A stretch of 64,000 nt of DNA from Cyanophora paradoxa CCMP329 (taxonomy: Eukaryota; Plantae; Glaucophyta): contig QPMI01000459.1 in assembly GCA_004431415.1 (NCBI GenBank), positions 121,963-185,962 on the forward strand, read 5' to 3'. Every line of letters begins with the position of its first letter. Positions within the stretch are counted from its first letter, which is position 1. The notes under the pieces are model-generated. The model did not search any database. It had not been told where the DNA came from and saw only the letters and a list, made by a program, of their open reading frames with translations. Of the stretch, positions 10,737 through 51,694 are shown piece by piece. The position numbers and the translations under genes are program-made.

Positions 10737-10934
10737 CCGTAGACGACTTAAATACCGCGCCACATATTACCGCGTTCTAAAATTTCGGCGCCGGTATGCG
10801 CTTTACCGCGCTACCAAATTACCGCGTTCCATCGTCTTCGAAAATGTATTATTTGTTAGCAAAGGGGGTAATTTTGAGCGCGGTAATTTGGCAGCGCGGT
10901 ATTTAAGTCAGCGCGGTATATAAGTCGTCTACGG
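10737..10934. mobile_element. MITE, Tc1/mariner/pogo-type, 198 bp
   Basis: 24-bp TIRs ccgtagacgacttaaataccgcgc / gcgcggtatataagtcgtctacgg (1 mismatch), TA on both sides (10735-36, 10935-36), and internal ttaccgcg/cgcggtaa subterminal repeats. Confidence 0.85.
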
Positions 10935-11513: not shown

Positions 11514-11612
11514 AATTACCGCGGTACCAAATTACCGCGTTTTAACAAATTCTCGACGGGGTAATTTGGTACCGCGGTAATTAAGTGAGCGCGGTATTAT
11601 AGTGCCACACGG
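11514..11612. repeat. Perfect 23-bp inverted repeat plus an orphan right end of a related MITE family
   Basis: aattaccgcggtaccaaattacc (11514-11536) and its reverse complement (11560-11582). Shares the ttaccgcg motifs and the ...acgg|ta terminus with the 10737 MITE; no left TIR found. Confidence 0.55.
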
Positions 11613-11955: not shown

Positions 11956-13485
11956 TTTTTTTTTTTGGTGAATTACCGGCCACAGTCTCTAGACACCAGC
12001 ACTGCGGGGGCTGCCCAGGGGGCATAAAGACAAAAAAGCAAAATAACTAAGACAAGAGCACGAAGAAAGATAAGACAAAGAGCCAAAATCGACAATAAAA
12101 AAGGAAAGACACAGAGCTCGAGACAGATCGATAGCGAGAAGAGACGATAAATCGAGCAGATCTAGGGACAGAGGATAACTGACACGAAGAAGAGCCAGAG
12201 CTAGAGATACCATCAATATCAGAAGGAATTACATCACTAAGAAGCGGGGGACAAAATTGAGAAAGATAAATAACAGGAAGAAGACAAGTAAGAGGAACAA
12301 CAAGACGACATGGAGGCGGAGGCGAAGCAGGACGATGCGAAAGGGCAGAGCTACGGCACGAGGTCGAGGAGGACACAGGAGGCGGAGCAGGCGGATCAAG
12401 AGCAGGCAAAAGGACAGTCAAAGGAATCACTAAAGCCGGCCAGGGTCGAGGCGGGCAATCGAACTGCAAACGACGGCGAACAACAGGTCGAGCACGAGGA
12501 CTATAGCTAGTATTGAAACTAACTCTAGCATCAACACTACGATCAGAATCCGAACCAGACCGAACTAAACTAGAAGACGAAGAAGTACGCCGGCGCCGGC
12601 GGGATACGATCGCGACCAGCGAAGCAGAAGACGAAGGCAAAGGCGGCAGTCCGGTATCAAGAACAAAGGCCGGAGGGTCCGGCCCGGCAAACCGCCGGGG
12701 GAAGTAGAAGGAGCCGCAGGCTCGGCAAGCCGGCGACGGGTACGACCACGAGTCCGGGAGGAGATCGGGGAAGCCGGTCCCGGAGCTGAGGGCCCAGGAG
12801 CAGAGCCAGGAGAAGGTAAGCCCGGCGAGAAATCTGACCCGGAGCCGGAACCCAGCGAACGACGACGACGAAGAGGCCCCGAGGAGCCACGACGGGGGAG
12901 CTACCGAGCAAAGTACTGACAGCCGGCGCCGAACACGGCGGCGGAGGTACCCCGCAGACAGTGGCAGGCGGAGAGTCCAGGGTCGATCGAGAGATCCGCC
13001 GACGGGAATGCGGCGGGGGCCGACGAGACGGAAGAGGCCTAGGCGAGGAGGGGCCGAGGAAGGGTCGGAGGCAGGGGAAGGGCCGCGAGCAGGTGACGGG
13101 GATCGCTGCCGGCGCCGAAGAGAGGGCAGCGAAGCTGGAGAAAGGTCGGGTGGCGCCGGATCAGATGACACGGAGGTCATGGCCATGGGCGGCGCAGAGA
13201 GAGACGAGCTCGAGGGCGCAAGGGCCCGACGAGGGCGCCGGCGGCGAATCTCACGAGCGCCAGGAAGCGGGATAGGACCCGCATATGGGACCCGAGGCGC
13301 CGAAGGGGGAGCAGGGAGCCGGAATGACGGGGAGACCGAAAAGAGGACAGTCTCGCCAACACTCGGAAGCGGGGCAGAGGCCGAGGACCCGGAGCTCGAG
13401 GGGGGGAGGGAGGGCGGAGGAGGAGAGAGAAGGCGGCTATTCGAAGGGTATGGAGAATCGAGAGCGGAGGCGAGGGAGGCGTTAC
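11956..13485 (-). mobile_element. Probable 5'-truncated non-LTR retroposon fragment (~1.5 kb)
   Basis: T11 at 11956-11966 (poly(A) on the minus strand) and a candidate 10-bp TSD taccgtagta (11946-11955 and 13486-13495). The minus strand is pyrimidine-rich with an open S/P/R-rich frame and no catalytic domain. Confidence 0.5.
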
Positions 13486-13585
13486 TACCGTAGTAGTACG
13501 TGCGCATGCACTGCCATATGCATGGCGTACCGTCACGGCGTTACTACCGTAGTAGTACGTGCGCATGCACTGCCATATGCATGGC
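13478..13585. repeat. Direct duplication of ~49 bp (period 59)
   Basis: ggcgttactaccgtagtagtacgtgcgcatgcactgccatatgcatggc occurs at ~13478 and ~13537. Confidence 0.85.
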
Positions 13586-15825
13586 AATCATGCACCGGTA
13601 CCGCGGCAGCGATCAGCGGATAGCTACGTGCGGTATCATAATTGGGGAAGGGTAAAACACTTCCCCTGTCCATGTCCCTTGGGCCCAACCCTACCCCAAA
13701 TCCCATTTCCCCGACCTCCGCAAAACCGGGGCCGCGCGGTACACCCTGAAAGCGCATCCCCAGGGGACCCCGAAACCATGTCTCCCGGTCCCGTCCGACG
13801 AAAGGGTGATCCAGGAACAGGCACCAACACCCGGGACAAAAATGGGTCCAGTGACGCACAGGGAGCAGATATACGGGCCAGACCAGTTCGAGGTCGTTGC
13901 GCGCATCATGTTCGACATTCCGTAATGCAAGAGCGAGGCCGGGCGCGAACGCGGTCGCGTGGGAGGACGCCGCGCGCGCTAGCCAATCACATTGGAGAGT
14001 GCGTTAACTTACCCTGAGAAACCTCTTAAAGTACCCCCCGGCCGCTTTCTCCCCCGGGCGCCGCAGCTCGGCTCGGCTCAACAATGGTTACGCCTCTCGC
14101 GCGCGCGGCAGCTTGCTGTGGCTCAGCGGCTAGCCGCGCCAGCCGCGCACGCTTCACCCGCGCCAACCGCGCCCCGACGCAATTGCACAAGCCGGCCGCA
14201 AGCCGGCCGCACTTGGCCAGCTATGCCACTTGCAACAAGCCGATGCCAGCGCGGCGCGCGCGCCGCGCGACGCAGAGCCCCCGCGCGCGCGCGATGCGCA
14301 TGCCTGCTGCAGCCGGCGCGCGCCGCTGATCATGATCATGAGCTGGCCCGCTGCGCCGCTTTTTGAGCGGAACGTGAGCTTGAGCAGCGTCCCCGCGCCC
14401 GCGCCCAGATCGCGCGGAGGCCTAGGCGCCGGCCAGCCCCTAGCTATGTAGCCACGCCGTGACGCACGTGCACCCGCAGCACATGCGCACTCGTGCACCC
14501 GCCACGCCTCCGCGCGCGACGGCCGCGGGGCATGCATATGCGCAGCCTGGCAGCTGCAGGAGCTCGAGCACGTCCATGGCCAGACAAGGTTCCCTCCCCC
14601 TTCCCAAGGCCCGCGCCTTACATAGCTATAGCTAGCTCGCTAGGCCCTGATCATGAGGCCTACCTCTAAGAGGACAGCTCGCCTCGATCGCGAGGACAGC
14701 TGCAGCCTTTTTTTTTTTTTGAGTTTTCCGTAGTTTATTAGGGGACAGAGCCCCTGGTACACAAAAAACATCGTTTTCTGTCTACCCTAGGCCTAGGTCT
14801 ACCCTAGGCCAACTAATATACTTTAGCCTAGTCTACTCCCCACTATTGGGTCTCCGACTAGGCGCCCCAAGGGCTATACCCTATTGCGAGCCCCGCCCCC
14901 TCTACCCTTGAGGCGGCTCTCTCGGAGCCTCCCCCCCGCGACGGGCCAGGGCCGGTCACGATGGGGTGGGGTAGAGAGGTGGCAGGGGGCTGGGGCCGGG
15001 GAGATTGTTGGGCTGGCAGGCTCAGGGTTTAAAGCCAAGCGGCGAGATCCCAAAGATGAGAAGAGAGAGGAGGAGATCTCCGCGGTGGTACCTCACGTGT
15101 TCCCGTGCAGGACAGAGGAGCGGGCGTGGAAGGCGGTGGAGGTGGCGGTGTCGGTGGAGCGACAGGGAACAGATGGGACAGGTTGCTGGAGGGGCGAGAT
15201 GGGGAGGGTGGAGCTGGAGAGCCCGTTTCGAGAAGAGGAAGGGTGGAGGAGGGGAGGGTGCGGGGGAGGAGGCTGGGGTGAGGGCCGGGCCTCTTCGGTG
15301 GGGAGGGCGGGGCGGCGGCCGGTCTTGTGGGGAGGCCGGTCTTGAGGTTCGGGAAGAGGCTCGGGCACAGCTGATGCGGCTGCGGACGACGCTCCATCCC
15401 GCCGCTGGGCGTGACCATGAGCAGCAGCAGGGGTGACGGAAGCTGCTGCAGCTGTTCTAGATCTGCGGGGGCGAGGTCCGGGTCCGGAATTATTGCCTCG
15501 GGCTGCACGGAATCCCGCCGACTCTTGAATTTCTCGAAGGAGGCGCGGGCGTCGCGTCCGCACTGTTGCCGTGCCGTCGGCTTGTGCCACTGGTGTGTCA
15601 GGCGGGGGCACTTGCGTTGGCGGACTGTCCTTTGGACTCTGGGGCCTAGCTATAGAGGTGTCGCTGACGGCCGACGGGCGCGGGCGGGGTTGGAAGAAGG
15701 TGCGGATGTCTGCTCGCGAGTTCCGGGCCGCAGGCCTTGGGGTAGGCTGCGCGCTCAGCGGGGGCCGGTATTGGGGTTCCGGTGCGGGCGTGACTATTTT
15801 GGGCCTGGATGGGCCTGCAATGGCT

Positions 15826-16848
15826 TCATCTTGGGGGGCGCGGTCTGTCTCGCTGGTTTTGGGGGGCGACACTGGAGCGGTACATTTTCCTTTGCGTTTG
15901 TGCTGCGCCAGGGCTTCGGGGAGGCAGCAGCGTAACCGCACCGGCAGCTGAGGGGGCATCCCGTGGCAGTTCTCCCGGGGCCAGCGCAGCCACCGGTATT
16001 GCCCGGGGCTGCTCGGGCTGGGAGGCGGTGCTCGTGGGCGCCTCCGTATCCAAGGCCTGCGAGCCTAGAATCCGAGAAAGAATGAGGCCGCGCCAGGTGG
16101 CGCAGTTAGACACAGTGCCCGTGAAGGAGGGTGTGTAGGCCGTGGGGTCATGTTCCAGAGCACGGACAAGTATTTCGGCGAAGGCACAGACGAAAATCCC
16201 GCAGTTGAAGCGATCGTTTTGGGCCGGGATGGGGAATCGGGTGGCTGAGGGGAGGGGCCAGGTGAGAGCGTCGTCGGCGCCGGTCGAGGAGCCTAGGGCT
16301 GCGCATTCGCGCTCCATGTTGAGCCATTTTAGGAGGGGCGGGAGTTGACGGCGGGCCTCTTCGGGGCCCGGGAGATTGTATCCATCGTATAGTTCAGCAC
16401 GGCGAGCACGGAGATGGAGGGCTGCAAGGATCCAGTGGCCCGGGGTGTGGATAGGGAAGAGTAATAGGTCATAGTCAAAGACATTAATTCCGCGCCCAGC
16501 GGTGCGACGGCGCAGGCGGGCGCTGCCCGCCGGCGTTATTGTCTGGGGAATAGCGGCGTAGAAAGTGTGCGGGAAAAGTAAGACGCGTCGGCGAGGGTTA
16601 ATTTCTCCGCTCGCAAGAAGGTTTAGTCGGGCAAGGTAGTAGTTGATGACGTCGGCGTTCACCCAGGACGAGCCGTTCAGCGTGGCTAGGTCATGGAGCG
16701 ATACGGAGGCACTGCCAAACAGTGCAGCGGGGCCGCTGCGGGCTGCCGGAGCTCTCGGACTGCGCTGTTGGGTAGAGCGCGGGTAGGGGAGCGGCGTACT
16801 TGGGCCCAGGCGGCACGTAATGCAGGTGGGGACGGCGGAGCCGGCCAC
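15826..16848 (-). CDS. Ulp1/SENP (peptidase C48)-like cysteine protease domain of the LINE
   Basis: Motifs DLATLNGSSWVNADVINYY, FPHTFY, LLFPIHTPGHWILAAL, LYDG and QNDRFNCGIFVCAFAE. The His-Asp-Cys triad and oxyanion Gln are intact. Confidence 0.88.
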   Translation of the reverse strand: MAGSAVPTCITCRLGPSTPLPYPRSTQQRSPRAPAARSGPAALFGSASVSLHDLATLNGSSWVNADVINYYLARLNLLASGEINPRRRVLLFPHTFYAAIPQTITPAGSARLRRRTAGRGINVFDYDLLLFPIHTPGHWILAALHLRARRAELYDGYNLPGPEEARRQLPPLLKWLNMERECAALGSSTGADDALTWPLPSATRFPIPAQNDRFNCGIFVCAFAEILVRALEHDPTAYTPSFTGTVSNCATWRGLILSRILGSQALDTEAPTSTASQPEQPRAIPVAALAPGELPRDAPSAAGAVTLLPPRSPGAAQTQRKMYRSSVAPQNQRDRPRPPR

Positions 16849-16908
16849 CCTGCATTACTGGCATTAATATTGGTGATGCTGTTAGCAGCTGCCGGCCTAG
16901 CTACAGGT

Positions 16909-17990
16909 CTAGGTCTCGGGCTCGAGCTCGGGGCGGCGGTAGGGGCACCGGCGTTGCGGGTATCGCTGTTGTAGGGGGGCCGTGGCCGGCCACGGTGCTG
17001 GGGGAGCAGCGCGGGTTCGAGAGCGGCGCGACTGGCTGACTAATTGTAGGTCTGATGAGAGGGTGAGCTGGCCGTTGGGTATCCGTCGACGCGGGGCCGG
17101 GGCCACCACGGTCGAGGGGCTCGTGGGCTCATCCCTAATCCTGGCTGGCATCGACCTCGCCGGTGAGGGCTCAGCAGGGCGCGAGGGTCGAGGTGCATGA
17201 GTTTGGCGGCGAGTAATCCCGTGTCGGCGTTGCCAGGACTGGACTTCGCTATTGCGAGCCTTCCAGATTGCTTGGGTGTAGTCTATGATGGTGGCCATAA
17301 TTGCGTTGGCGCATTTAAGCGCCGCCGGTCTACGTACATCTAAGTAAATCAGGGCAGGGATGAGGCTACGAGGAAGGAGGAGCCTGACGGTGTGGCGGGG
17401 AGAATCGCAGGCAAGGTCGGCGAAGAGTTTGCTGCCGAGGCTTTGCCACTGATCGGGCAGGCCATAGAGTGGCTGCGTGAGGTGCGAAGGAAGGGGGCCC
17501 GGCCGTTGGCGCTGACGCTCTGACCATCCCCAGTTTGCATCGTCAGCCAGTGCAAAGGCCGGGAACAGTTGGCGCAGCAACAGTCCGTCCTGGCGCAGGG
17601 CCGGGGGCAGCTTGTAGGCTGGGTCGCCAGCTGCAGCCGCATCGACTGCAGTTTTTAGGCGTTGAGACGATATGGTTTCGTACAATAGGTTGAATATCTT
17701 AGTTTGGGCTTCGATACGGAGGGTGCGTGTTGCTGGGCAGAGACCAAAGGCGTGGTCGTGGGTTTCAGGCGTCCCGCTAACGATAGGGGGGGCCGCGGTG
17801 CCTGGCGTGCGTCTCGTGCGGCCGGGTCGCCGTTGGGGCCGTTCCGGATCCCACCGTCTTCCTCGGGTCGGACGCAGGCGGCTGCCATGGCGGGGCTGGG
17901 GTGGGCCGGCCGTCTGGGCCTAGCACGGACGCGCAGCCTGCGCGAACACAGAGTCCATTTGGATTTATTGCACTATAGAGATGGGGAGCG
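16909..17990 (-). CDS. LINE C-terminal zinc finger (C..C...ExxxHxxxxC) and IWKARN motif (frameshifted)
   Basis: LCVRAGC (~17925-17950), ETHDHAFGLCP (~17735-17767) and AIWKARNSEVQSWQRRHGIT. Confidence 0.7.
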
Positions 17991-18489
17991 TCCCGGGCAC
18001 GTTCACCCATGAGGGGTGCGAGTCCGGAGCTGAATTTCGTGATTTGAGCAAGCCTCGCATTCAGGGGTGCGATGCATCGCGGGAGAGCCCTTTCTTGCGG
18101 TATTCGCGGGCGAGGCGCGCACGGTCGACCGGACTGCCCAAATGGCATTTTTCGGTTGCAAGGAGACGGGAGAAGTTCCGAAATTCGCACGTATTTTTTA
18201 CGTGTGCTCGCGGGTCAGACTCAACTCTGTAAACTCTACGAGTGTCGTAGTTCTCGTTCCAGCAGCGCGGGGGCGAAAAGAGTAGGACCATGTCAAATCC
18301 GCCAGGGGGAAAGACCGGCTCCCGGCGGGCGTGCCACGCGCGTTTTGATGCAACTGTTGCGGCCGGGGACGGGTCTTCGGGGTCAGATTGCCAGGCTGCT
18401 TCCTCAGGGTCAGCCCAGGAAGAAAGTTCCCGGCCGTCGAGTGCCTGCCGGGAGAGGTCTGCGCTGGGGTGCAGAGCCAGTGCCGCAGC

Positions 18490-19510
18490 GGCGAGGCGGT
18501 CGGCTCGTGCGTTGTCCCGATCAAATGCACGGTTTGGAACCCGTTCTTCTTCCACCAGCAGGGGCAGGCTTGGTAGTCCTGGTGTATGCTGACCTAGCGC
18601 AGCCCGGGCTTCGCGCCGCCTCTGTCGTTCTGCTCGCCTGGAGGCACGAGACGCTTGCTGCATTTGGTGGACGGCTCGGCGGGCGTTCCGACGGTGGATG
18701 TGGGCAGTGCCCGCGCGAAGGTGCTCGGAGATATAGTTGTAGGCGCCGGTTAGCGGGTTCGCGCGCCCTTCGTATACTCCCGTGCCGGGGCCATATTGAG
18801 CTATCAGTTCCGCCTCCGTAGGTTCGGGAGCGACCGGGTCTCGGTCAGAGAGGTAGGATTCGTATGAGTCTGCGTCTGATTCCGAGTCGTGGTCGGCCAC
18901 TTCAGCGGGGCGGCAGCCGGGCGCGGGCGGCGCCGAGTTATATATTCTTTCTGGTGGGCTTTGACTTTGACAAGACGTTCTTCGTATAGCATTCTGTCGG
19001 GTGCCACGGCCCTTGCTAGTGCAAGCCGGATGCACTGCACCTCAGCATACGCTTTAAGGTGATGGGAGTACGAGGCTCGAATGCAGCTGCGAAGGGTGGC
19101 GGTGGCGCGATGCGAGACGTACTTGGAATAGTCCGCCATTGCAGTGAAGCTGTCAGTTTTCACTGTGCAGCCTTCGGGAGAGAGCAGCAGGGCGGACAGG
19201 ACGGCGAGGAGCTCGCCTTTGTTATTGTTCACTGTGCCAGGACACGGGGCCACGAAAAAGTCGCTGCCGTCGGTCGGGATGGCGTCTGCAAGGCCGCGAA
19301 GTTTCGCCACCTGGTCAGTATCGACGCCGGTTGTGCCCAGCCGGTCAGCTAGTGCGTGAATTTGTTGACGGAGGGCTATCCCTCGCTGCGTGCGGGCAGC
19401 TTCGTCAGCTAGTGAGGCCGGGTTGCTCTCACGGGGCCAGACGCCAGCGTAGGCCGTGAGTGCAGCTTCTGAGGCGGCGTCCATGGTACTGGCATCCGTG
19501 GCTGCGAGTC
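18490..19510 (-). CDS. RNase H domain of the LINE, with large insertions
   Basis: ATDAS, NNNKGELLAVLSAL, VKTDS, KVKAH (18954-18968) and NARADRLA (~18490-18513). Confidence 0.8.
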
Positions 19511-21039
19511 GGCGCTCGCGGTCGAGCGGGAGGGAGGTGCGGCCGAGCTCCGCGGCAATCAGGTTCCAAAATGGGTCAGCATACTCTGACGATGGGATGC
19601 AGAAGTCGCTCAACTGTCGGCGTTGGGGGTAGGCCCGAGGCGCTGTCGGCGGGGGGACGGTCCCAGGGTCGCGAGCGGCGACTCCATCTGGCCGCTGGGG
19701 CGCCTCGTGATCATCTGGATCATAATTCCAGTCCTGTTCCCACGGGGGGAGGAAATGAGTGTCGCGGAACTCGGGCCACCACGTTATTTTATCTTCAAGG
19801 AAAATGCGAGCATGCTCGGCGACACGGCCTGACCGCGACTCGGGGACCAGGCTCTGAAGTCGGGCGGGGTAGATGTAGGCTGTGTCTTCGGTCCAGCGGC
19901 ACCGTTGGGAGGCCGGGTCTGAGTGGTCACATGCGCGGCGGAGAGCCTCTGCTTCCGGCGTTTTCGCTGTGAAGCGGCTGTCGCATTCTTTGGGATCCAT
20001 TATGCAGCGGAAGAAGGAGACGGGTTCGCCGGTGGTGTCATATATGTGGTCCTCTCGGTCGTCCTGGCCTTTGTCTCGGCGGACCCAGTGTTCGAGCTCA
20101 ACTAGGACGCGTTCTCTGCCGTCGTCAGCGTCAGTTGTCCGCCGGATATTGCAGATGCGTCCTAGATACGCTTCCGTTGTCCAAACGAAGCCGCCGACTT
20201 TGTACTGGGGCGAGAGCAGGCCGGCTTCAAGAAGGGTACGTTGGGCTGCAGCCGGATTTTGCGCAGGCTGCAGGTGCATGGGGAAGCGGAGACGACGGGG
20301 GATGGCGCGCGGGCCGACGGGCTGACATATTGCTCGGGTGAACGACGGGAACCAGGAGGGAGGTCTATTGAGTCGCTGTTTAATTTTCCCGCTGCCCCAT
20401 AAGCTAATCCAGTCGAGCACACTGACGCCGTCGGGCCCCGTGACGTCAGCAGCTGTGAGGATATCGTGGCGCCAAAGGAATGGTGCAGCCTCACGCAGGA
20501 GGCGCGGGGGGAGCAGTGTTGTGAGCACAAAGCGGCGTTCGAGCTGCGGGTGAGGCAGGGCCGGAACGAGATAGTCCTTGCCTGAGTCGAGTTTGTAGCC
20601 GGCGCGGGTCAGATTTCGCGCTACAGCTAGTGCAAAATTGTCTCTGTAGGCTGCGGGGCCCAGCTGTAAATTGGGGTAGCAGTATGGCGGAAGGGGAAGC
20701 CCCAGTTGCTCCTGCGCTGCGAAAATGCGGTGCATGATATACGGGAGAAGCAGGGGGTGGTTCGTGCGGATGGTTTCATCGAGCACGTGAATGGCCAGCT
20801 GTTCGTCCTCCGTTCTCTTGAGGCCGTAGAAGCCTCGGCTCCACATGAGCGCGTTGGGCGTGGACCCCCTAAGGCGGGCATGATGTTTAGTGAGCGTCAT
20901 CCAGAGAGTGTCGAGCTGGGCACATTGTCTCTCGGTAAAGGAAACAATCTTGCAGGCGTAAGTGATGCGAGGGAGAAGGACGCTATTTACTATGTATATC
21001 GTCTCTTTGGCGGTGAGTTTCTTACGCCTTAGTATCGCG

Positions 21040-22051
21040 CAGGCTGCCCGAGCTGTTGAGTATACAGCCTCAAATTGCCGCCGCCAGTCCAGATTTGCTG
21101 TCATCCAGACCCCGAGCACCTTGAATGGTTTGTTCGGCGCAAGGACTTTGTCGGCCGGTTCTTTAGCATCGGGCGGGCCTAGTAGCGGGGCAGACGGGCG
21201 TGGGGAGACGTTGTTGTACGTAAATTCGGTTTTCTTCGCGTTGAGGGCAATATCATGTATCCAGAAGAATTCAGAGGCCAGGTCTGCGTGCAGCTGGATG
21301 CCCCGGCTGTACCGCTAATAAGTACGGTGTCGTCTGCGTATGCTTGCCCCGGCGAGGTCACCCGAGGCAGGCGCGCTCGCAGGCGTCGGGTGGGCGCGGG
21401 CAGGTTAGCGTCAGACGCAGAGGGCGGCGGGCCCATGGAGTATTGGGTGCTCTCCGCAGCGCTGACTTCGCGTAAAGCCGATAGAAATACGTCATAGAAG
21501 ATGAGCCAGTGAATTGGGGACTCGGTTCCTCCTTGCGGGAGCCCGCACTCCACATCGAAGGGGTCAGTTGGGCCGTACCCTGTCGCGACGGACGCTGTAC
21601 GTGATGTTGATATTTGTCCGTAGAGGCTTATGTACCGTTCGGGAATTTTTAGGCGGCGGAGTGCCATTTCCATGCTAGACCAGCTGACGCTGTCGTAGGC
21701 TCTGCGAATATCTAGCAGTAGCAGATAGATCGGTTTCGAGAATTGTTTTGCGTCCTCCAGTAGCGCGCGCAGCATGTACAGAGGCTCGTCGGTGGACTTG
21801 CCTCGAGTAAAGGCGAAGTTCGCGCCCTGTAATATGTCGTGTTTGCGGAGAACGCGCGAGAGGCGGTCAGTGAGGACTGCCGTCACGAGTTTCAGCGTGC
21901 ATTCTTGGAGTGTAATGGGGCGGACATTGTCAGGGTGCCCATCCCATTCCCCGCCCTTGGGATAAGACATATATTTCCGTGAAGAAGGGGCGCAGGGACA
22001 GACGAGAGTTTTAGGATCAGATTTACCGTAGTGAGGATTACCTGGCGGCAC
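21040..22051 (-). CDS. Non-LTR reverse transcriptase (frameshifted)
   Basis: RPITLQEC, FTRGKST, LDIRRAYDSVSW, GLPQGGTESP, YADD (21329-21340) and LGVWM. Confidence 0.95.
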
Positions 22052-24398
22052 GTCGGGAACAGGTTATCGGGTTCTTGGAGCGGCTCCGGGTCCAGGCCCG
22101 CCTTGCGTAGTTCTTCGCAAGTTTTCTTTGAAAGGACCGGTGCCGTCCACAGCATTTTTATCATTTCGTGGGAAAATCCCGAGGGCCCCGCCGCACCGTT
22201 TCGGAGAGAGCCGATGATTCGGTCCAGTTCGGCCTCGCTGGTGGGTTCCATTAGGTACACATAAATTGCATCATCAATATCCTGGCGCGGGAGTGAAGTC
22301 GGCGCCATATTGAGGCCTCCTGTGCACATGTACTAAGTGGCAGCGCGCCCGGGTCCCTGTTCGCTGTGAGTGGGCTACGCTGCCGTGTCCAGGCATGCAT
22401 GTGATGGCGTGCGAACTGTTTCACTGCATCTTCATTGCCGTATACCTGATATTCTCCAGCGTGGCAGAGGGAGAAGGAGGTAATCGGCCTGCGTTCTGGG
22501 GCTTCAAGTGTTTGGCGGAGGTATTGGGCGAGGTCTGTCTTGAACATGCGCTGCGAGCGCTCTCGGTTTGCTCTGATTGTCGTGGCTTCGAAACGTTTAA
22601 TGTGGGCCTGGACTTTGGTGTCCAAGGCCGAGGCCCAAGTGGTGAAGCTTGGAAAATAGTCGAGCCAGCTTGGTTGTCGGCAGAGAATGGCGGCGGCACA
22701 GGGGTAGTGGGAGTTTAAGATAGCCTGACCGCTTGTCTATTGGGAGTTTGTCAAGCCGGCGGTTGTGATTTGAGATTGCCCTGCGCAGGTCAGAGAGGGA
22801 GTGCCGTACGCGGCGCGGCGTGGAGTCGATCCCGTGGCGCGCCGCTTCCCATGCCTTGCGCAGTTCCTGGGCCCTCGTGAGCAGGTTGGATTCGGGGCGG
22901 CCGCGGCGGGAGAATTTTTGAGGGATTTTTGGGGGCGTAAAGATGCCAAATACTGGCGATTGGCCGAGGTCACAGATGTGGGCGAGAGTGGATTTGAGGG
23001 CTTCGTGCAGGCGGGCTAGGCGGTCCTCTGGCGGGGTGCCGTCGTCGTCCTCCAGCGTTGCGAGTAGCTCTCGTACGCTAGCTGAGGACCCCGGCACCGG
23101 CTGCTGTAGCTTTTCTTCCAGTAGTTCTTTGAAGCGAATTTTTGTGAGCGATGCCTGTGTCGCGTACTTGAAACGCGGGGGGCCGGGCGAAGACGCTGGG
23201 GGCCCCGCGAGGACAGCTGCAGCCGCTGAGCTCGCCTGGCATGGCCAGCCTCGGCCGGAGCCGGCCCAGCGGCTCGCCCGGCCACCGCGCGCGCGCCTTC
23301 TTAAGCTTAAGCGCTAGTTTAAGTCCCTGCAGCTGCCCTCTGCATCTAGATCTTGGATTCGCCGAGGTTAAATGCCCTTCCCCGGACCCAACTGACGCGC
23401 GCGGCAAGTCAGTGGCCCTTTTATGTACTATGCACTAGCCTAGTATAGTGTGCCACGCCCGGCACGCCGGCGCCGGGTGCTCCCGAAAACTAGCACGCGG
23501 CGGCCTCTGCTCGCGATCGGGCTCTGACTGGGCCGGCCGCCGGTTGGAAACGGGGTAGAGTAGTGACGACCGGCGGCGGTCCGGCGCCGGCGGCGGCGCG
23601 GCCCGGCGGGGCGCGCGCGTGCGGCGCGGGCCCGCGCCTAGGCCTGCGCTGCTGCGCATGCACGCGCGCACTGCCGGCGCGGCCCCGCGCCTGCAGCTGC
23701 AGCTGCAGCCTGCAGGCTGCAGCTAGCTATAGCGCTGCGCATGCCGCAGTGCGCAAATCATAGCTAGCTAGCGCTATAGTATGCATATGCTGTGCATGCG
23801 CATGCCGGCGCCGCGCCTGCCAACTGCCGCCGGCCGGCGCGGCGCCGCGCCCGCACTGCCGGCGCCTGCACTGCTAGCGCTAGCGCGCTGGTGACGCCTC
23901 GCGCGCAAGTCCAGCAAGCCGCTAGCTATAGCCGGAGCTCAGCTATATAGCTAGCTTCGCTGGCCAGCTAGCGAGCCTGTCGGCTAGCTTGCCGGCTAAA
24001 TCGTGCGATTGTACCCAGCAATCGGCTCCATTCCCCCCTGCTCGAGTCTCGATGCGGCTGAAACTCTCGGGAGCTCTTTTTTTCCGCGTTCGGTACAACA
24101 GGTACTTGATGCGGCCTAGCGCGCCACGCGCTGCTTCCCGAGCGCTGGCATGTATGACATGCTCTGTCGAGCATCGCAAGAGCTTTCTTATGCACTTGGT
24201 CCGGCCTCTATACGACCACAGGATCAGGCGCTGCAAGGGATAGTCCAGGAAAGGGTCCGGTCCTTTTTTCCGCGCAGCATTCCCCTCTTTTCGGGTTCTG
24301 ACAACGAATTCCGGGCTCTCATGCATGCACTAACACTCGGTTAAGAGCTCAGAGCTGGATCGGGAGATGAGCAGACTCGTCATTTTGTAAGCTACCGA

Positions 24399-24433
24399 AA
24401 ACGGGGGCCCTACCCCGTTTCCAATTAGCCTAG
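24399..24433 (+). mobile_element. Canonical Helitron-like 3' terminus
   Basis: Hairpin aaacgggg-gcccta-ccccgttt (24399-24420), a 9-nt spacer, then CTAG (24430-24433) followed by T. The 5' end was not identified. Confidence 0.45.
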
Positions 24434-24777
24434 TAGAGCGTCGCCGAGTCGACGTCCCAATTTCAAGTTTGCAGCTTGCACTGCGGCCGCCGGGCAATTG
24501 CAAGTCCCAATCTGCATCTGCAGCTTGCAAGTCCCAATAGTCCGCGTTCGCGACCTTGCCAGTCTTGCTCAGGAGCCTCGGCGCCCGGCTAGCATCCTTC
24601 CGTTGGCAATAGTACGTATACATCCTCCAACTGCAGTGCCGCAGTGCAACGCCAAGGTTTCGAATTCTGCTTCTTCCTCAGATTGGCAACGCGGCGACGA
24701 CGGCCGGTGCCGCGGCCGCAACAGTCCGACGGTCGCTGCAAAGACGGCCGCGGCTTACACGCAGCAGTGGAGAAGAT

Positions 24778-27122
24778 ATGCTCCGCGTTTTCACCAGCTG
24801 CGTAGAGAATTCGAAGGATACGGAAGAGCCCACGTTTTCTCCATCAAAGGTGCGGGATTTGCGCTGGTCATCGGAGAAGGCGCCGACCGCCGGCCGCGGC
24901 CGCGGGTTTATGCGGCCGGGCGCCGGCGTACGCCTATATAGCTATTGTCATCAAAAACAGCTATAGCTAGCGCTGCCGCGCTTTACTCGCGTCATATTAT
25001 AGCGCCTCTCGCGATCGTCGGCGCTAACGTTGAGTGGGCTGCTCGTAAACGTGGGCGCTGACCCCGGTCGCTGCTCCCTCTCTCTCGCGCGCGCAGACAT
25101 CACTCGCGTCGACGTCCGACAACGAGTCGGAGCTCCCGAGCCCGCCGCGCCCTTGGACTTCGCGATCGCTGGCGCCTGACGTCGACGCCGCGGCCGCCGA
25201 CGACTCCACCTTCGAGGACGTTTCCGCACACTTTGACGACGTCTTCACCGACGTCCCGTCGCCCGCCGCCTCCGCCTCCTCCCGCTCTTTCACGCCCCCG
25301 CCCCTCGCCCCCGAACCCGGCCGCCTAATGTACTCGCAAGCCTTCCCGGAGGGCGCGAACCCCAACTTTCCAGCATTCCTCAGCGCCTACGGCCAGCCGC
25401 CCAATCCGCAACAGCAGCCCGAGCGCGGCCCCTGCATCCCCGCCCTCACCAGCGCCCCCGGGCCCGCGCCTGTCGCCGCTTGCGCAGCCGGCGCCACCTC
25501 CTCTGGCCAGGGACGGGCCGACCCCTCGGCCGCAGAGATCTTCCCGGCCGGCCCCGCTTCCTTCGGATTACCCATGGCCATGGGCCCCGGTGGCTGGCCA
25601 TTCCACTCCTACTTCCTCGACGTCAGCTCCGCGGCCGGCCATAGCCAATTGCAAGGCCAGCAGCAGCAGCCTCGACGTGGCCAGGGGGATCTGCAGGTGC
25701 ACGCGGCGGCCGCTATGCTCTCCGGGGGCCGGCGCCCCGCGGCCGCATCGATATCGGGGTCCAGCAAGCAGCCTGCGCATGCATATGCAGCGTCGGTCGC
25801 GGCTTCGCAGCACTTGGATCTGGCGGCGGCCGGCGATCGCGAGCAGGAGCACGCGCACACGTTCGTGAAGCTCGCGACCTCCGCCGAGCAGCTGCTGCCG
25901 TGGCCGCCGCACGCGCAGCTCCTTGATCATGAGCAGCGCCGCCTGCCCCTCGAATTCCGGCAGCAGCTCGCCGCGCAGCTCCACTTCCAGCACCAGCAGC
26001 TCGAGCAGATGCAGCGGCAGCAGGCGGCCGCCGCCGCCGCGCATGCATATGCGCACGGGCGCGTGCACGCGGCGGTGAAGGCGGAGGGGCGGGGCTACGC
26101 GGAGGCCTCCTCGTCGAGCGCCTCGTTCCCTCGCGTCTTTGAGCCGCCCGTCGGCCACGCCGCCTCCGGATCCGGATCCTCCTCCCTCGCCCACGTCGCA
26201 GGCGACCTCTCCTGGCCGCCCCACCCCGCAGGCCCCTCCTCCTCGAGCTCCTCCGGATCCGCCTCGAGCCCGTCCAGCACGCGCGCCGTCGCCGCGCCCC
26301 GCAGCCAACCGCCCCGCCGGCGGGGGCGGGGGAGGAGGGGGCGGAGCTCGAGGTGGATGAAGGTGCGGAGGAGGAGGGGCGGCCGAGCGTGGGGTGGACG
26401 GCGGAGGAGCCGCGCAAGCTCCTCGCCCGCATGCGCCGCCACTTCAAGGTCCCCTCCGAGGAGGCCGTCAGGGCCATGGTGCGCCCGCCGGCCCGCAGCC
26501 CCGTCCCCGTTCGAATTCTAGATCTGATGACCGTGATCATGCATATGGCAGGGCCTGAGCGGCACGACGATGAAGCGGGTCTGCCGGCGCTGCGGGATCA
26601 AGCGCTGGCCCTTCCGCAAGTTCGACTCCCTGCGCCGCTGGGCCGCCGTGTGCGTGAGAGCTGACCATACGCGTGTGCGTTTCCCCCAGCGGTGGCTGAT
26701 GGCGGGGCGGGGCGGGGGCAGGGTTCGGGGGCTGGCGCACCTGCAGCAGACGGAACAGTGCCCGCCGATCACTGGCTTCAGCGAGGAGCACTACCTCGGC
26801 CTCATTGAGGGCCGCTCCCAGCAGATCATGGAGGACCCCAACACCTCGAGTGCGCCCCAGCCTCCAGGCCTATAGCTAGCTAGCCCCAGCCTCCAGGCCT
26901 ATAGCTAGCTACAGGCCTGTGACGCGCTGATGCTCACCGCGCTCGCGATCGGCAGTCGAGGACCTGGTGTGCTACCTCCGCAAGGAGCTCTTCAAGCGCG
27001 CCCTCGGTACCGGTGTCGCCGGCTCCGACGCGCCCTCCTCCGCCTCCAAGGCCGCCGGCCGCGAGAGCCAGCGCCGCATCGCAAAGGTGCACACCGTCGC
27101 GAGCTCGAGGCAGCTTGCATAG
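24778..27122 (+). CDS. RWP-RK domain transcription factor, RKD-like (spliced; apparent frameshifts near 26300-26350)
   Basis: MRRHFKVPSEEAVRAM / GLSGTTMKRVCRRCGIKRWPFRKFDSL, followed by QQIMEDPNTSIEDLVCYLRKELFK, which resembles the RKD C-terminal motif. Putative exon 1 (24778-24849) splices in frame to 25097; TAG at 27120-27122. Confidence 0.85.
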
Positions 27123-27464
27123 ATATCGATCCTTTTGCTTAAGCTTGCCTTCAAAAAATGGTTTACCGCTCCCCTGACTCTACATGTACATGCGCCGCCA
27201 TCAGATTTTTGCCGACGCGGGAATCAAGACTGACTGATACTACTACTCGATCACATGTACAACTACTATAACATAAACTGCTATATATATCATAGTATAT
27301 CATACTATATATCTGGTTTTCGCACACTGTGACAGGGGGGCGGCGGATTCGTGAAACGGATTGAAGATATCGATATATATTGGGCCAGAATTATTCCAAT
27401 CCCAAGTCGAGCCAAGCTGAAGTCGATCGAATTGGGGAAACCGTCTTTGCGCATGCATGCAGCT

Positions 27465-27965
27465 GTGTGCGCATGCATATGCATATGCGCATGCGTCACG
27501 GCGTCTAGATCTTCTCTAGATCTACAGCTATAGATATACGCTTGAGACGCTGACCGGCGCGGCGGCCGTGCTTCTCGGTACGTGCGAGGTCACTGAGTCA
27601 TGCGCATGCCTGATCATGCATGAGCTCGGATCGCACTCGAGGTTTGCGCTCGCCGAAAGGAGGAGGAATTTAATTCGGAGGAGGAATTCAATGCAGCTGG
27701 CCCGGCGCCCGGCCTCAATGCAGCTGGCCCGGCCCGGCAGCTGTCACAGTGTGCGCGCATGCATATGCATATGCGCATGCATATGCGTCACGGCGTCTTC
27801 TCTAGCTATATAGATCTATAGCTAGATGTACGCTTGAGACGCTGACCATATATGCATGCTTCTCGGCACGTGCGACGCCATGCCGCAGTGCCTGATCATG
27901 AGCTCGGATTGCACTCTCGGGGTTTGCATGCGCTCGCCGAAAGGAGGAGGAATTTAATTCGGATT
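27465..27965. repeat. Imperfect direct duplication (~220-bp units at ~27465-27680 and ~27750-27965)
   Basis: Shared blocks gcatgcatatgcatatgcgcatgc, cgcttgagacgctgacc and gctcgccgaaaggaggaggaatttaattcgga. Confidence 0.85.
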
Positions 27966-28041
27966 CGTGCATGCATGCGCATGCAGCTGGCCCGGCCTAA
28001 ATTTAAATCGCAAATTTGTCTCCTCTAGATCTGTATATATA

Positions 28042-31000
28042 CAAGATCCGTGCTCCTGCGGAGCACTAAGTACGGCGAAGCCTCGCGGACGCCCTCGCGG
28101 CTGTCACAGTAGGCCTATAGGGCACTCAGCGACTGGCCAGCGGCCTGGCCGATCGCGAACAGCTTTCTGGCTGGAAGCTGGCTGGCTGATCATGACGGCT
28201 AGTCCAGCTAGCGCTGGCCGGCTAGAGGATCGAATATTAATGTACTGAGGAAATAAAGGGTGGAGCAGATCTAGATTGAGAGGAGTTTATTTTTATAATA
28301 TTGTTGGGAAGGAGGCCCGGGAGGGGCGAGGTTCTCGCGGCCAGGCGCGTGCACAGAGCTTGCGAATCGCTTAAACAGAATCTCGAATGCATATAGCATC
28401 GATGTGCGGGGCTGCGGAGGCGAGGGCGCGCGGAAAGATGTGCAGGCGTGGCCAGGATCGAATTTTTGGCGTCGGCTGGGTTGTCGTGCGCTGTCGCGCC
28501 CGCAGAGCTCGCGGAAAGCAGCGGAGGCGAGGGCGCACGGAAATATGTGCAGGGCTGTGCAGGATCGCAAATTTGGCGTCGGCCGGGTTCTCGTGCTTTT
28601 TTGCGCCCACAGAGCTTGCGAAAGACTTTACAAAGCTCACAAATGAATACTGTAGCGATGGGCATGCAAGGGGATGCGACGGCGCGCGGAAAGATGTTCA
28701 GGTCCGTTCAGGATCGAATTTTCGGGGTCGGCTGGGTCCTCGCGGCCCGGCGCATACGGAAAGCATGCGGAAGGCTTTGCCTACATCTCAAATGCTTATG
28801 CTATTGTTCCGTGCATGCGCCGCGGCGTGGGCGCGCGGAAAGCTGTCCGGGCCTGTCCAGGATCGAATTTTTGCGTCGACTGCGTTCTCGTGCCCTGTCG
28901 CGCCCACAGAGGTTCCGGAAAGCATTTAAAAGATGTCAAAGAATATTGTAGCGATGCGCTCGCGTGAGGATGCGAGGGCGCGCGGAAAGATGTGCAGGTC
29001 CGTGAAGGATCGAATTTTCGGGGTCGGCTGGGTCCCCGCGGTCCGGCGCATCTGTAAAGCGTGCGGAATGCTTTGTCTACATCTCAAATGCTTATGCTAT
29101 CGTTCCGCGCATGCGCCGCGGCGCGGGCGCGCGGAAAGATCTCCGGGCCTGTCTAGGATCGAATTTTTGCCGTCGGGTACCTTCCTGCGCTGTTCCGGCC
29201 CCGAAAAGCGGATTTCGGGGGTGCGCAGGCCCTGCTATGTCTATGCGCGCTAGTACGCATCGATTGCGCGCGTCGCGGGACCGGGCGGAACCGGCCGGAT
29301 CAAATTTTCGGCCGACTCTCTGCACTGGAGCGTCGACGGCGCCCGAAATCGAGCTTGCGGCGATGCGCTCGCGCTCGCGCGCCGTTCTGTATCGTTCTGG
29401 GGCGTCCCTGGCGCGATTTCGTCGCGGGACCGGGCGGGACCGGGTCCCACCTTCTGACCCGGACTGCATTTGTCGGAGGTTAAGTACCGGAATTGATCCA
29501 GAGGGAAATTCGATTTTCGTGCGACGCCCACGGGCGAGCGGTCGTCTTAGGGGAGCCAGGACGCTAAAAATGGATCTAGAGAGGTCTGTGGGGGTTAGGG
29601 TAGCTGAGTCATTAGCGGCAATCGCGTCCGTGTCGAGGCAGAATTAATAATTCTGCCTCGAGGGAGTGCGACACGGAAATTATTTAGCAGGGGGGATCCG
29701 GGACCGGGTCCCACCTTCTGACCCGGACTGCATTTGTCGGAGGTTAAGTACCGGAATTGATCCAGAGGGAAATTCGATTTTCGTGCGACGCCCACGGGCG
29801 AGCGGTCGTCTTAGGGGAGCCAGGACGCTAAAAATGGATCTAGAGAGGTCTGTGGGGGTTAGGGTAGCTGAGTCATTAGCGGCAATCGCGTCCGTGTCGA
29901 GGCAGAATTAATAATTCTGCCTCGAGGGAGTGCGACACGGAAATTATTTAGCAGGGGGGATCTCGAGTGGAAAAAAAGGTTAAAAAAGGAATTAGGGTCG
30001 TCGGTTTTTGGGTTTGAGAAAGAGGCTTCGGGGGGATCCGGGACCGGGTCCCACCTTCTGACCCGGACTGCATTTGTCGGAGTTTAAGTACCGGAATTGA
30101 TCCAGAGGGAAATTCGATTTTCGTGCGACGCCCACGGGCGAGCGGTCGTCTTAGGGGAGCCAGGACGCTAAAATGGGATCTAGAGAGGTCTGTGGGGGTT
30201 AGGGTAGCTGAGTCATTAGCGGCAATCGCGTCCGTGTCGAGGCAGAATTAATAATTCTGCCTCGAGGGAGTGCGACACGGAAATTATTTAGCAGGGGGGA
30301 TCTTGAGTGGAAAAAAAGGTTAAAAAAGGAATTTCGGTCGTCGGTTTTTGGGTTTGAGACAAGATCCGTGCTCCTGCGGAGCACTAAGTACGGCGAAGCC
30401 TCGCGGACGCCCTCGCCGCTGTTACAGTAGGCCTATATATATAGGGCACTCAGCGACTGGCCAGCCTGGCAGCGGCCTGGCCGATCGCGAACAGCTTTCT
30501 GCAGCTGGCTGGAAGCTGGCTGGCTGACGGCCAGTCCAGCTAGCGCTGGCCGGCTAGAGGAATATTAATTTACTGAGGAACTAAAGGGTGGAGCAGATTG
30601 AGAAGAGATTAATTATAATATTGTTGGGAAGGAGGCCCGGGAGGGGCGAGGTTCTCGCGGCCAGGCGCATGCACAGAGCTTGCGAATCGCTTAAACAGAA
30701 TCTCGCGATCGAATGCATATAGCATCGATGTGCGGGGCTGCGGAGGCGAGGGCGCGCGGAAAGACGTGCAGGTCCATGCAGGATCGAATTTTCGGGGTCG
30801 GCTGGATTCTCGCGCCCTGTCGCGTCCTCGGAGCTCGCGAAAAGCTTAACAAAGATCTCAAATTACTATTGTAGCGATGCGCACGCGCGAGGATGCGAGG
30901 GCGCGCGGAAAGCTGTGCAGGTCCGTATACGTACAGGATCGAATTGTCGGGGTCGGCTGGGTCCTCGCGGCCCGGCGCATACGCAAAGCGTGCGGAAGTC

Positions 31001-32330
31001 TTTGCCTACATCTCAAATGCTTATGCTATTGTTCCGCGCATGCGCCGCGGCGTGGGCGCGCGGAAAGATGTCCGGGTCCGTGCAGGATCGAATTTTTGCC
31101 GTCGGCTGGGTTCTCGTGCTCTTTCGCGTCTTCGAAGCTTGTGGAAGGCTTTGATAAAATCTCAAATGAATATTGTAGCGATGCGCATGCGCGAGAATGC
31201 GAGGGCGTGCGGAAAGATGTTCAGGTCCGTCCAGGATCGAATTTTCGGGTCGGCTGGGTCCTCGCGGCCTGGTGCATTTAGAGACCGTGCGGAAGTCTTC
31301 TTCTACATCTAAAATGCATATGCTATCGTTCCGCGCATGCGCCGCGGCGTGGGCGCGCGGAAAGATCTCCGGGCCTGTCTAGGATCGAATTCTTGCCGTC
31401 GGGTATGTCCAGGATCGAATTTTTGCGTCGGCTGGGTTCTCGTGCCCTGTCGCGCCTGCAGAGCTTGCGAAAAGCTTTAAAAAGGAGTCAACTGAAAATT
31501 GTAGCGATGCGCTCGCGTGAGGATGCGAGGGCGCGCGGAAAGTTGTGCAGGTCCGTCCAGGATCGAATTTTCGGGGTCGGCTGGGTCCTCGCGGCCCGGC
31601 GCATTTAGAGACCGTGCGGAAGGCTTCTTCTACATCTCAAATGCTTATGCTATCGTTCCGCGCATGCGCCGCGGCGTGGGCGCGCGGAAAGATCTCCGGG
31701 CCTGTCTAGGATCGAATTTTTGCCGTCGGGTACCTTCCTGCGCTCTTCCGGCTCCGAAAAGCGGATTTCGGGGGTGCGCAGGCGCTGCTATGTCTATGCG
31801 CGCCCGTAAGCATCGATTGCGCGCGTCGCGGGACCGGCCGGAACCGGCCGGATCAAATTTTCGGCCGACTCTTCGCACTGGAGCGTCGACGGCGCGCGAA
31901 ATCGGGTTTGCGGCGATGCGCTCGCCCTCGCGCGTCATTCTGTATCGTTCTGGGGCGTCCCTGGCGCGATTTTGTCGCGGGACCGGGCGGGACCGGGTCC
32001 CACCTTCTGACTCGGACTGCGTTTGTCGGAGGTTAAGTATCGGAATTGATCCAGAGGAATATTCGATATTCGCGCGACGCCCACGGGAGAGCGGTCGTCT
32101 TAGGGGAGCCAGGACGCTAAAAATGGCTGTGTGGGAGTTCGGGCAGCTGTGTAGTCTAGAGCAATCGCGTCGGTGTCGAGGCAGAATTAATAATTCGTCC
32201 TCGAGGGAGTGCGACACGGAAATTATTTAGCAGGGGGGATCTCGAGTGGAAAAAAAGGTTAAAAAAGGAATTCCGCTCGTCGGTTTTTGGGTTTGAGAAA
32301 GAGGCTTCGCCTGAAAGAGGCTTCGCCTGA
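28042..32330 (-). mobile_element. Two head-to-tail copies of a non-autonomous Helitron-like element (28042-30359, 30360-32330) with internal subrepeats
   Basis: On the minus strand it starts A|TC at 32330 and ends with hairpin GTGCTCC-GCA-GGAGCAC plus GGATCTTG|T at 28042. No TSD; AT target; 11-bp subterminal inverted repeat GGCGAAGCCTC; direct CTTG|TC junction at 30360/30359. Many gcgcgcggaaag..caggatcgaatttt subrepeats. Confidence 0.7.
29437..30300. repeat. Three near-identical ~264-bp repeats within Helitron-like copy 1
   Basis: ggaccgggtcccaccttctgacccggactgc... recurs at ~29437, ~29701 and ~30041. The identical ORF start lies at 29531 and 29795. Confidence 0.9.
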
Positions 32331-45450: not shown

Positions 45451-45706
45451 TGTCGGATGAGAGGATTCCCACCCGGTGCAGCGTCCGTGCGGTCACGCAC
45501 GGGCTGGGGCTGTAGCTGGGAGCACAAGTGGTCTATTCACAAGTGTACCCGTCCAGGGATCGCGTACCCCCAAACGGAGTCGCGCCCGGCGCTAAGTCAG
45601 AATACAGAGAGTGCTAGAGCTAGCTGCTCGATAGCACTAGACTAGGGCTAGCGGCTACGCATAGACTGCCGGCTAGCCTAATCCGAGGGAATCGCGGCAC
45701 GCGACA
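45451..45706 (-). repeat. 3' LTR
   Basis: Identical by eye to 63682-63937. Confidence 0.97.
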
Positions 45707-45718
45707 ACTCCTCACTCT
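45707..45718 (-). other. Polypurine tract
   Basis: Minus-strand AGAGTGAGGAGT abuts the 3' LTR. Confidence 0.8.
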
Positions 45719-46395
45719 GCATACGGTGCGTCCTCGCACCGGACCGCGCCAAGCCGAACGTCGAGTCTGCATGCTCGACGGGGCGTCCACCCCACCGCCG
45801 GGGTGTGCACCAACCACGGCAGCGACAGGGCGGCGGCGAGTGAACTCCTCTCGAAGTAGAATGTCCGTCGTCAGCAACCAGATATGCCAGGTAGCATAGC
45901 TCGCGACCGAAATAGGAGCCGATACCAGCATAGTGCATGTACCTAGGCAACCCCAGGCCAAGCTCGAAAGATGGAAAAGCATAGAACTCGAAACCCCCAA
46001 AAGCTGGCCCAAACTCGCTCCAACGGCGAGAGCCGAAGGAGAGTGGCACGGATGGGAAGTTTCACCGCCTCGGGAAGAAACCAGCGAGGAGGTATCCGGG
46101 CCGCCCATCAGGCCCAACGAAAGGATAGGGCACGACTGAGTGCACCCCCAGCCAGCAACCTCGAGCCCCTCACGGACCCGCAGGCACCCGGGAGGCCTAC
46201 ACCCAGCCACTCTCCACGAGCGACGGGCCCAGATCCCAGAAAATGGAACGAAAGGCCCAGATGGCGCCCCGTGATTGGCCACCAGCCAACCCACGTCCCA
46301 CCTCGGAAGCCAGGGCTGAGGCAAAGCGGGCAAAGAAATCTGCCCCACGGCGCAAGCACAGCGATCGCAAAGGGAACAGCAATGGGACGAGCTTC

Positions 46396-50700: not shown

Positions 50701-51694
50701 ACTCCTCCTCTGCATTAGGCACCGGCCGCGGTGCCTCAGCGGGCTTCGCGTCGGGTGCTGCAGTCGTAGGGGGTGGGGCATCGGGCCGGGCCGAAAGCGA
50801 GGCTGTGACCACACTCTGGGGTGGGGCCTCGGCGTCGGCGACCGGTGCGGCCTTGCGGACCGTAACGTCGCCGCGCATGGCGCGGACTGCATCGAGCAAG
50901 TCGCGCTCCGCTTTTTCGGAGAGACCGGGGAAGGTCGAGCGCAGGGTGGCGTCTCTGGGGACGGACACTGCCTCGACTGCGGCGACGAACTCGTCGACCG
51001 AGGGCCTGTGATCGGGGCCGGCGTTGGGGACGCGCTTCGTGACGACGTGCTCATAGCATCGTCGTCGAGGCTAATGATGCTCATAGCATCAAGGTCCTGC
51101 AACGGCCGGTCGGCTGTGTCGAAGGGCAGCTCGCCAAACGTGACGACTATATCGTCGACGTCGTAGGGCGGTGCGCGGGTGGGTCGGCGGGCTCAGCAGG
51201 CGCTGCGCTAGACAGAGCGCGCTGCTTTTCCGCCTCATCTACGACAGAACGTAGGGTGGAGATTATTTTCTCAACGTCTTTGGCGGGCTCATATGCCGCG
51301 CCAAGCATGCGTGCTTTTCTATTAAAGTGGCGGAGTCCAGTGCGGCGTTTGGCAGGCACGATTCGCAGCCGGCGAATCAAGAGGTCTGTCAATGCACTCG
51401 CACTACAAGGCATTTGCTCAGGTTCGTACTCAAAATCACCAGGCGGTAGGGCGACCGCCGAAGCGACCGCTACTACCGATCCTAGCGGCAGGGTTACCGG
51501 CTGCCGGCCAGGATTGCACAACCGCACGTGAAACATTTTGTCTCCCGGGTGATTATGCAGCTGGTAAGGGCAGAGTACGCCCAAGGCTTGCGGGGACTCC
51601 GGCGACGGCTCGACGTAGAGGTGCGGCAACTCACGCGTTGCCGGGCCCTGCCCATTGAGCGTGCATGGGACGAGGGCCTCTCCGACGGGGAGCT

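Follow-up and report, generated by a model that had tools for sequence, protein, structure and literature searches.

Short inverted triplications of two exact forms in a 64-kb window of the Cyanophora paradoxa genome: probable excision footprints of a cut-and-paste transposon

Two tandem copies of a high-copy repeat in Cyanophora paradoxa differ by small insertions in which a short word X is followed by its reverse complement, rc(X), and then by X again. Which process wrote these scars, and how far does it reach beyond the repeat? An initial annotation of the locus had taken them for the dominant indel type and had offered three possible sources: excision footprints of a transposon with a 2-3-bp target-site duplication, a hairpin-forming nuclease with end joining, or replicative strand switching. 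The window analyzed here is the whole stretch of 64,000 nucleotides (contig QPMI01000459.1, positions 121,963 to 185,962), and all coordinates are counted from its first base. The two copies were delimited as follows:

28041-30358, minus strand: copy 1 of the high-copy Helitron-like repeat that serves as scar substrate (alignment and summed read depth)
30359-32330, minus strand: copy 2, lying in tandem with copy 1 (A/TC start at 32330)

Summed read depth over copy 1 amounted to 20,000-70,000, against about 35 for single-copy DNA. The ends of the repeat fit the designation as Helitron-like on the minus strand (A/TC start, 3' hairpin with a 7-bp stem), but its terminus reads CTTG/T instead of CTRR; Rep/helicase was absent from the repeat. 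The repeat is the substrate of the scars, not their cause. A near-perfect tandem triplication (264-340 bp) of its 5' end occupies 29435-30364, which lies outside the read-checked DNA.

The heads of both copies (28041-28450 and 30359-30776) were aligned over 390 columns, and 11 substitutions and eight isolated indels were obtained. Five of the indels were +6 insertions of the form X-rc(X)-X, one was a +8 insertion X-C-rc(X)-G-X, one a +4 insertion and one a +2 slip in a T run. Seven of the eight, including one in a TA run that is open to slippage, fit forms of this type, in line with the annotation's statement that nearly all head indels follow one rule. All sites that it had named were recovered at their positions by alignment of the copies. 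The scars are listed without strand:

28124-28134: older +8 scar with one substitution, common to both copies; its 8 bases are missing in other family members
28187-28195: +6 scar tga-tca-tga, copy 1 only (alignment); its six bases are missing in high-depth family contigs from four runs
28228-28233: +4 insertion ga-tc-ga, copy 1 only (alignment); its four bases are missing in high-depth members
28267-28275: +6 scar aga-tct-aga, copy 1 only (alignment); its six bases are missing in high-depth family contigs
30434-30443: +6 within a TA run, copy 2 only; the rule fits, and slippage fits equally well
30462-30472: +8 scar cag-C-ctg-G-cag, copy 2 only (alignment)
30499-30507: +6 scar ctg-cag-ctg, copy 2 only (alignment)
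30703-30711: +6 scar tcg-cga-tcg, copy 2 only (alignment)
30925-30933: +6 scar gta-tac-gta, present in 1 of 16 sister subunits and, as had been noted, otherwise missing from them

The +4 at 28228 belongs to a minor class, either a 2-bp form or a trimmed 3-bp scar. Since members lacking the bases at 28187, 28228 and 28267 were found among the deep family contigs, the events are insertions. Some family members carry an extra +6 after 28391, making tag-cta-tag, and the insertions arise independently in different repeat copies. Within the high-copy repeat, the read evidence consists of family members without the insertion, while the copy-1-specific alleles are seen in the assembly. Scars were strongly concentrated in the head, with 7 per 11 substitutions compared to about 2 per 117 in the body of the same repeat (Fisher p=6e-6), and the hot spot coincided with the 3' end of copy 1 (28041-28400). 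The description as dominant indel type therefore holds for the head and fails for the body. Age alone is insufficient to explain these values, and hot spots exist.

Counted over the whole window, the 3-mer form X-rc(X)-X was found 318 times, compared to 30-46 expected from Markov controls of order 1-4, so that the enrichment over controls proposed by the annotation was obtained. The 4-mer form was near background (9 versus 3-5 expected), and the 2-mer form was weakly raised (214 after collapsing, versus 126-174). Of the 2-3-bp target duplication that had been postulated, 3 bp was retained, the unit length being fixed at 3, whereas 2 bp found weak support. Slippage or generic repeats were rejected as a source, as XXX was raised less and elsewhere, and the 4-mer form stayed near background. 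When single letters a and b were allowed between the arms (X-a-rc(X)-b-X, 16 letter pairs), the C/G pair stood out with 68 occurrences versus 5.0 expected, confirming the proposed enrichment of the +8 length, while the other 15 pairs gave at most 10 each, at or near background. A 2-bp C/G form showed no enrichment. X-CG-X was raised, as was X-GC-X, and both were left uncounted because they derive from period-5 GC repeats in introns. In total, about 330 motifs in the window exceed expectation. Decayed forms with one mismatch were likewise in excess, indicating that scars have been formed over a long time and up to recently.

The +8 form had been regarded as an 8-nt variant of the +6 scar. It is instead a second fixed class, in which C and G are unexplained by the flanks: both could have been templated by the flank in only 6 of the 68 scars, which is about chance, and flank templating was thus rejected as the source of C/G. 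The example at 30462 is one of these six, whereas the following two scars in a decayed Ty3 integrase are not:

8097-8107: +8 scar of the decayed integrase copy, with X = GAC; the intact copy is without the insertion
8477-8487: +8 scar of the decayed integrase copy, with X = GCT; the intact copy is without the insertion

The C/G pair is two-fold symmetric, matching the expectation for two equivalent broken ends. Hybrids of 7 bp were about ten times too rare, with an excess of about 23 versus 230 expected if the ends were independent. Alignments of paralogs and copies showed that each insertion repeats its neighboring flank in reverse-complement form. Among reconstructed target sites X was nearly any triplet, complementarity between the flanks was at background (24-30%), and no flanking inverted repeats were present at these sites, so that such repeats were rejected as seeds.

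Independent Illumina data, a check that had been proposed for these sites, were available for part of the window. Eighteen DNA runs contained 74-82% of sampled words from 24000-29400. Contigs from four independent runs (2012, 2019 and two of 2024) matched motif-rich single-copy DNA with 0 differences and 0 gaps over the stretches 24399-24767, 24760-25260, 25339-25870, 27053-27674 and 27650-27958. The read comparison spans 23500-29300, and the copy-2 sites rest on alignment. Two short-read contigs covering 25339-25870 (532 and 475 nt, 38 substitutions) differ in length by the 57 nt to which the insertions in this stretch add up. It is hardly conceivable that the scars were introduced by long-read assembly or polishing: although the assembly was made from PacBio RSII data with Quiver polishing (PMC6704402), short-read contigs from 2012, 2019 and 2024 match its motif-rich single-copy stretches with 0 gaps, the 57-nt difference between paralogs is seen in them as well, and the excess extends to decayed forms with one mismatch. 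The exact match shows that the motif-rich single-copy DNA is not an assembly artefact, and this reading is refuted for those stretches.

The density of scars differed widely between regions. Excess scars per kb amounted to 23 around an RWP-RK gene, 9-15 in the region 1-15 kb, 14-22 in repeat heads, 1-3 in repeat bodies and 0.5-0.8 in a young Ty3 element and a LINE, which is a spread from 0.5 to 23 per kb, or about 40-fold. Greedy collapsing, which loses some scars common to both copies and can over-collapse, was used for these densities only. Two features of the hot region are:

23201-28040: densest scar field of the window, with about 23 per kb and 14-15% of non-coding bases
27464-27996: local duplicate pair with many nested scars, in which several indels obey the rule (alignment, density count)

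Young elements were nearly scar-free (0.5-0.8 per kb), whereas old and gene-flanking DNA was heavily scarred (9-23 per kb), and near-identical sequences at different loci carried very different scar loads. The process can be called pervasive within the window, as had been proposed, but with a density varying from 0.5 to 23 per kb the wording genome-dominant requires qualification; scars are the dominant indel type in hot regions only.

The young element is an 18.5-kb Ty3/gypsy element at 45451-63938 with identical 257-bp terminal repeats, in which Pfam detected reverse transcriptase (RT), RNase H, integrase and a zinc knuckle; its decayed relative lies at about 7900-10450. The LINE, with an RT, is on the minus strand at 15000-23200, and a downstream open reading frame (ORF) at 15826-16848 encodes Ulp1 (Peptidase_C48), for which a length-limited search yielded no homolog at E 1e-8. 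Many +6 motifs lie at 12000-13500, where the plus strand is strongly purine-rich (AT skew 0.49) and a long minus-strand ORF had no Pfam match. A second high-copy repeat was apparent from read depth at 23900-24450 (up to about 7,000 versus 35).

The densest field surrounds a gene in which the scars have entered coding sequence:

25097-27119, plus strand: RWP-RK transcription-factor gene tig00020734_g13601 (piecewise identity to EukProt EP00741 Cyanophora paradoxa)

Thirteen small in-frame insertions, each of two or four residues, set the encoded protein apart from its paralog tig00021135_g18925. At 11 of these 13 a perfect X-rc(X)-X motif was found, so that the gene carries at least 11 in-frame scars missing from the paralog. 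The scars contribute in-frame dipeptides to a transcription factor. The first exon contains 18 six-base and 0 eight-base motifs; this scarcity of +8 scars (Fisher p=0.016 versus all hot non-coding DNA, 0.068 versus flanks only) is modest evidence that the reading frame was under selection during scar build-up. In-frame scars reach about 80% of the +6 density of neighboring non-coding DNA (15 versus 19 per kb). Few such insertions were present in the paralog, and the difference in load may reflect either relaxed selection or locus-specific targeting. Relative to the paralog, a one-base frameshift lies near 26261 (26240-26290), ahead of the RWP-RK domain, and is present in the short-read contigs; the published gene model crosses it via an intron at 26126-26232. 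Because of this frameshift the copy may be a recent pseudogene, or else it may be spliced as in that model.

Of the three sources named at the outset, the excision footprint is favored, and the element can be specified further as one that duplicates 3 bp and has C...G ends. With a probability of about 0.7, we consider the motifs to be excision footprints of a cut-and-paste transposon with a 3-bp target duplication, as read from the scar, and C...G termini, formed via flank hairpins. A cut-and-paste DNA transposon would insert and duplicate any 3-bp target X. On excision, its transposase would nick the 5' ends of the element and seal each flank into a hairpin, which a host nuclease would open at most three bases from the tip. 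Because both flanks copy one target, the palindromic arms would be complementary and join to X-rc(X)-X. If the nick were placed one base inside a C...G element, the tip would retain the C on each strand, giving X-C-rc(X)-G-X. A symbolic model was set up with a 3-bp duplication, flank hairpins opened 0-4 bases from the tip and joining at terminal microhomology. With a nick at the border (offset 0), 10 of 25 opening pairs led to X-rc(X)-X; with offset +1 and a C-starting element, likewise 10 of 25 led to X-C-rc(X)-G-X. In the model the target duplication itself provides the microhomology, which would account for the uniformity of the scars. Since 7-bp hybrids are so rare, two families may be involved, or a single complex that cuts both ends alike.

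The steps of this scheme have precedents. Flank hairpins are established for MULE, hAT, Transib and RAG (PMC5499845), and Ac/Ds leaves hairpin-derived palindromic footprints with microhomology joins (PMC5873905). Published hairpin footprints are heterogeneous instead of taking two exact forms, which speaks against this reading (PMC5873905). For CACTA elements, a 3-bp target duplication, an initial C and footprints after excision are documented (PMC3193017). In agreement with a target duplication without fixed sequence, unit 3 only and nearly all triplets were found here. Taken overall, the responsible family is probably CACTA/EnSpm (CMC), to which a free 3-bp target combined with C...G ends points. 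The fixed C and G in the 68 scars reveal just the first element base, and superfamilies other than CACTA also begin with C. To our knowledge, no CACTA transposase is biochemically known to cleave via hairpins.

In the 64-kb window, a search for terminal inverted repeats (TIRs) with a 3-bp duplication yielded just chance pairs and one TA-flanked MITE; an element combining C...G termini with a duplication of 3 bp was not among the results. Neither a CACTA/CACTG TIR element nor a TnpD-like transposase was found in the window, and Pfam detected no DDE transposase in 20 long window ORFs (Ty3 RT/integrase, LINE RT and Ulp1 were found). Rfam gave no matches, CACTA proteins linked to Ulp1 were not recovered by a length-limited search, which says little, and no trio of filled, empty and excised states of one site occurred among in-window paralogs. 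As a scar persists until mutated and an active element may stay only briefly, few filled sites are expected, and their absence from 64 kb is weak evidence against the transposon reading. The main strain on it is that in-frame scars were fixed in an exon almost as if neutral: at about 80% of the non-coding +6 density, inserted elements must have left fast or been spliced out.

The MITE (10737-10934, 198 bp) is Tc1/mariner-like: it is flanked by TA on each side, has inverted subterminal repeats, and its 24-bp TIRs begin with CCGTAGACGAC; a short related element lies at 11514-11582. The leader of the young Ty3 element differs from its decayed copy by an 8-bp indel (63237-63247) that reads gct-CACTA-gct, and a similar ctg-CACTA-ctg occurs at 61184; suggestive only, this could be a 3-bp duplication around a CACTA end motif, or equally a deletion between 5-bp repeats. 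An 18-nt inverted match joins 6018-6035 and 27738-27755, 21.7 kb apart, with the same +8 motif (X = ACA) and four matching outer bases, and its core has a third copy at 27324. The match could be chance, a binding site or the ends of a large element.

An element-free, hit-and-run origin, which corresponds to the hairpin-forming nuclease among the three sources named at the outset and in which a nuclease or a stray or domesticated transposase makes a 3-nt staggered double-strand cut and the scar is written in one step, is unlikely but deserves weight. The ends would be filled in, then capped or snapped back, sometimes after one C, and joined by microhomology. Two-ended symmetry and free target choice fit this scheme equally well, about 330 excess motifs in 64 kb were accompanied by no element, and in-frame scars would be fixed in an exon more easily without a knock-out phase. 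However, it needs exactly one C on both ends or on neither (the hybrid excess being about 23 instead of 230), for which element termini account at no cost, and the absence of filled sites would be expected anyway if element residence is short compared to scar lifetime. We know of no enzyme of this kind. Were such an element-independent system at work (a domesticated or free CMC-type transposase, or a staggered-cut nuclease with hairpin capping), for which we see a slim chance, it would target gene-flanking DNA, build a sizeable non-coding share and give proteins dipeptides, and would be a host-level insertion mutator rather than transposition debris.

Short-range replicative template switching, in which a polymerase would change to the opposite strand for three bases and then switch back, is improbable. 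The four-point model can yield inverted-plus-direct repeats (PMC5453318), and in formal terms X-rc(X)-X belongs to this type, but the model explains neither the untemplated, symmetric C and G nor the constant unit length of 3, and the targets are without flanking inverted repeats or microhomology. Sequence-driven errors should moreover strike paralogs alike, yet their loads differ strongly. For the +8 class, template switching is largely refuted by the untemplated C/G (6 of 68), and the strand switching that had been proposed is disfavored. Template-switch mutations (Loytynoja and Goldman, 2017), ODIRA and DUP-TRP/INV-DUP share the direct-inverted-direct layout; unlike the scars, they are rare, variable in length and fully templated, and large inverted triplications are seeded by pre-existing inverted repeats.

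Footprints of other superfamilies (Tc1/mariner, PIF/Harbinger or hAT) and polymerase-theta templated insertions at random breaks are very improbable: the TA-flanked MITE has C...G ends and mariner footprints keep terminal bases (PMC4561436), but mariner requires TA and PIF/Harbinger requires TAA/TTA and excises cleanly (PMC4561436), whereas X is any triplet here, TAA makes up 3 of 242 six-base scars (2.4 expected), the mariner pattern of a TA duplication with retained terminal bases and no flank inversion was not seen, hAT geometry (offset -1) predicts a +4 form that was not enriched (208 versus 184-199) and duplicates 8 bp instead of 3, and random templated insertions by polymerase theta should differ in length.

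Among known systems, Ac/Ds, whose hairpin model is credited to Coen et al. 1986 (as cited in PMC5873905), resembles the scars in its flank-copied palindromic P-nucleotide insertions and microhomology joining. It differs in its 8-bp duplication, in heterogeneous lengths with deletions, and in palindromes centered on the complement of the element-adjacent base (offset -1), a form that is not enriched here; its footprints come from single-locus assays and are not a genome-wide class. RAG, Transib and MULE share the flank hairpin and its opening by host enzymes (PMC5499845), and a border-exact nick gives +6 in the model, but their duplications are 5 or 8-9 bp, RAG joints are diversified, and Muta1 excision is more than 90% precise. 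CACTA/En-Spm shares the free-target 3-bp duplication and small footprints, and its 5'-C...G-3' termini (PMC3193017) would agree with the first element base read from the scars; neither element nor transposase was seen in the 64-kb window. A two-form, genome-saturating footprint at such density or in coding sequence was not found described in the literature searched, which left out most subscription papers, in agreement with the annotation's statement that no such process was known to it. The C. paradoxa genome has been described as repeat-poor, with mention of neither palindromes nor EnSpm (PMC6704402). The chemistry is already known; the two exact forms, their density and their coding use appear new.

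Excision footprints are usually ragged and known from few loci, whereas two exact forms occur here at up to 23 per kb. In hot spots about one scar arises per one or two substitutions, and scars reach about 15% of some non-coding stretches. If the transposon reading is true, the scars would be a genetic readout of CACTA/EnSpm-type cutting, with flank hairpins and a nick at the border or at +1. In 1985, Schwarz-Sommer, Saedler and colleagues reportedly proposed plant transposon footprints as a source of protein and regulatory diversity, and on the same reading this proposal would become testable at genome scale. Scar density would date sequences and map past insertion hot spots, and the scars would be a source of non-coding DNA in a repeat-poor genome (PMC6704402).
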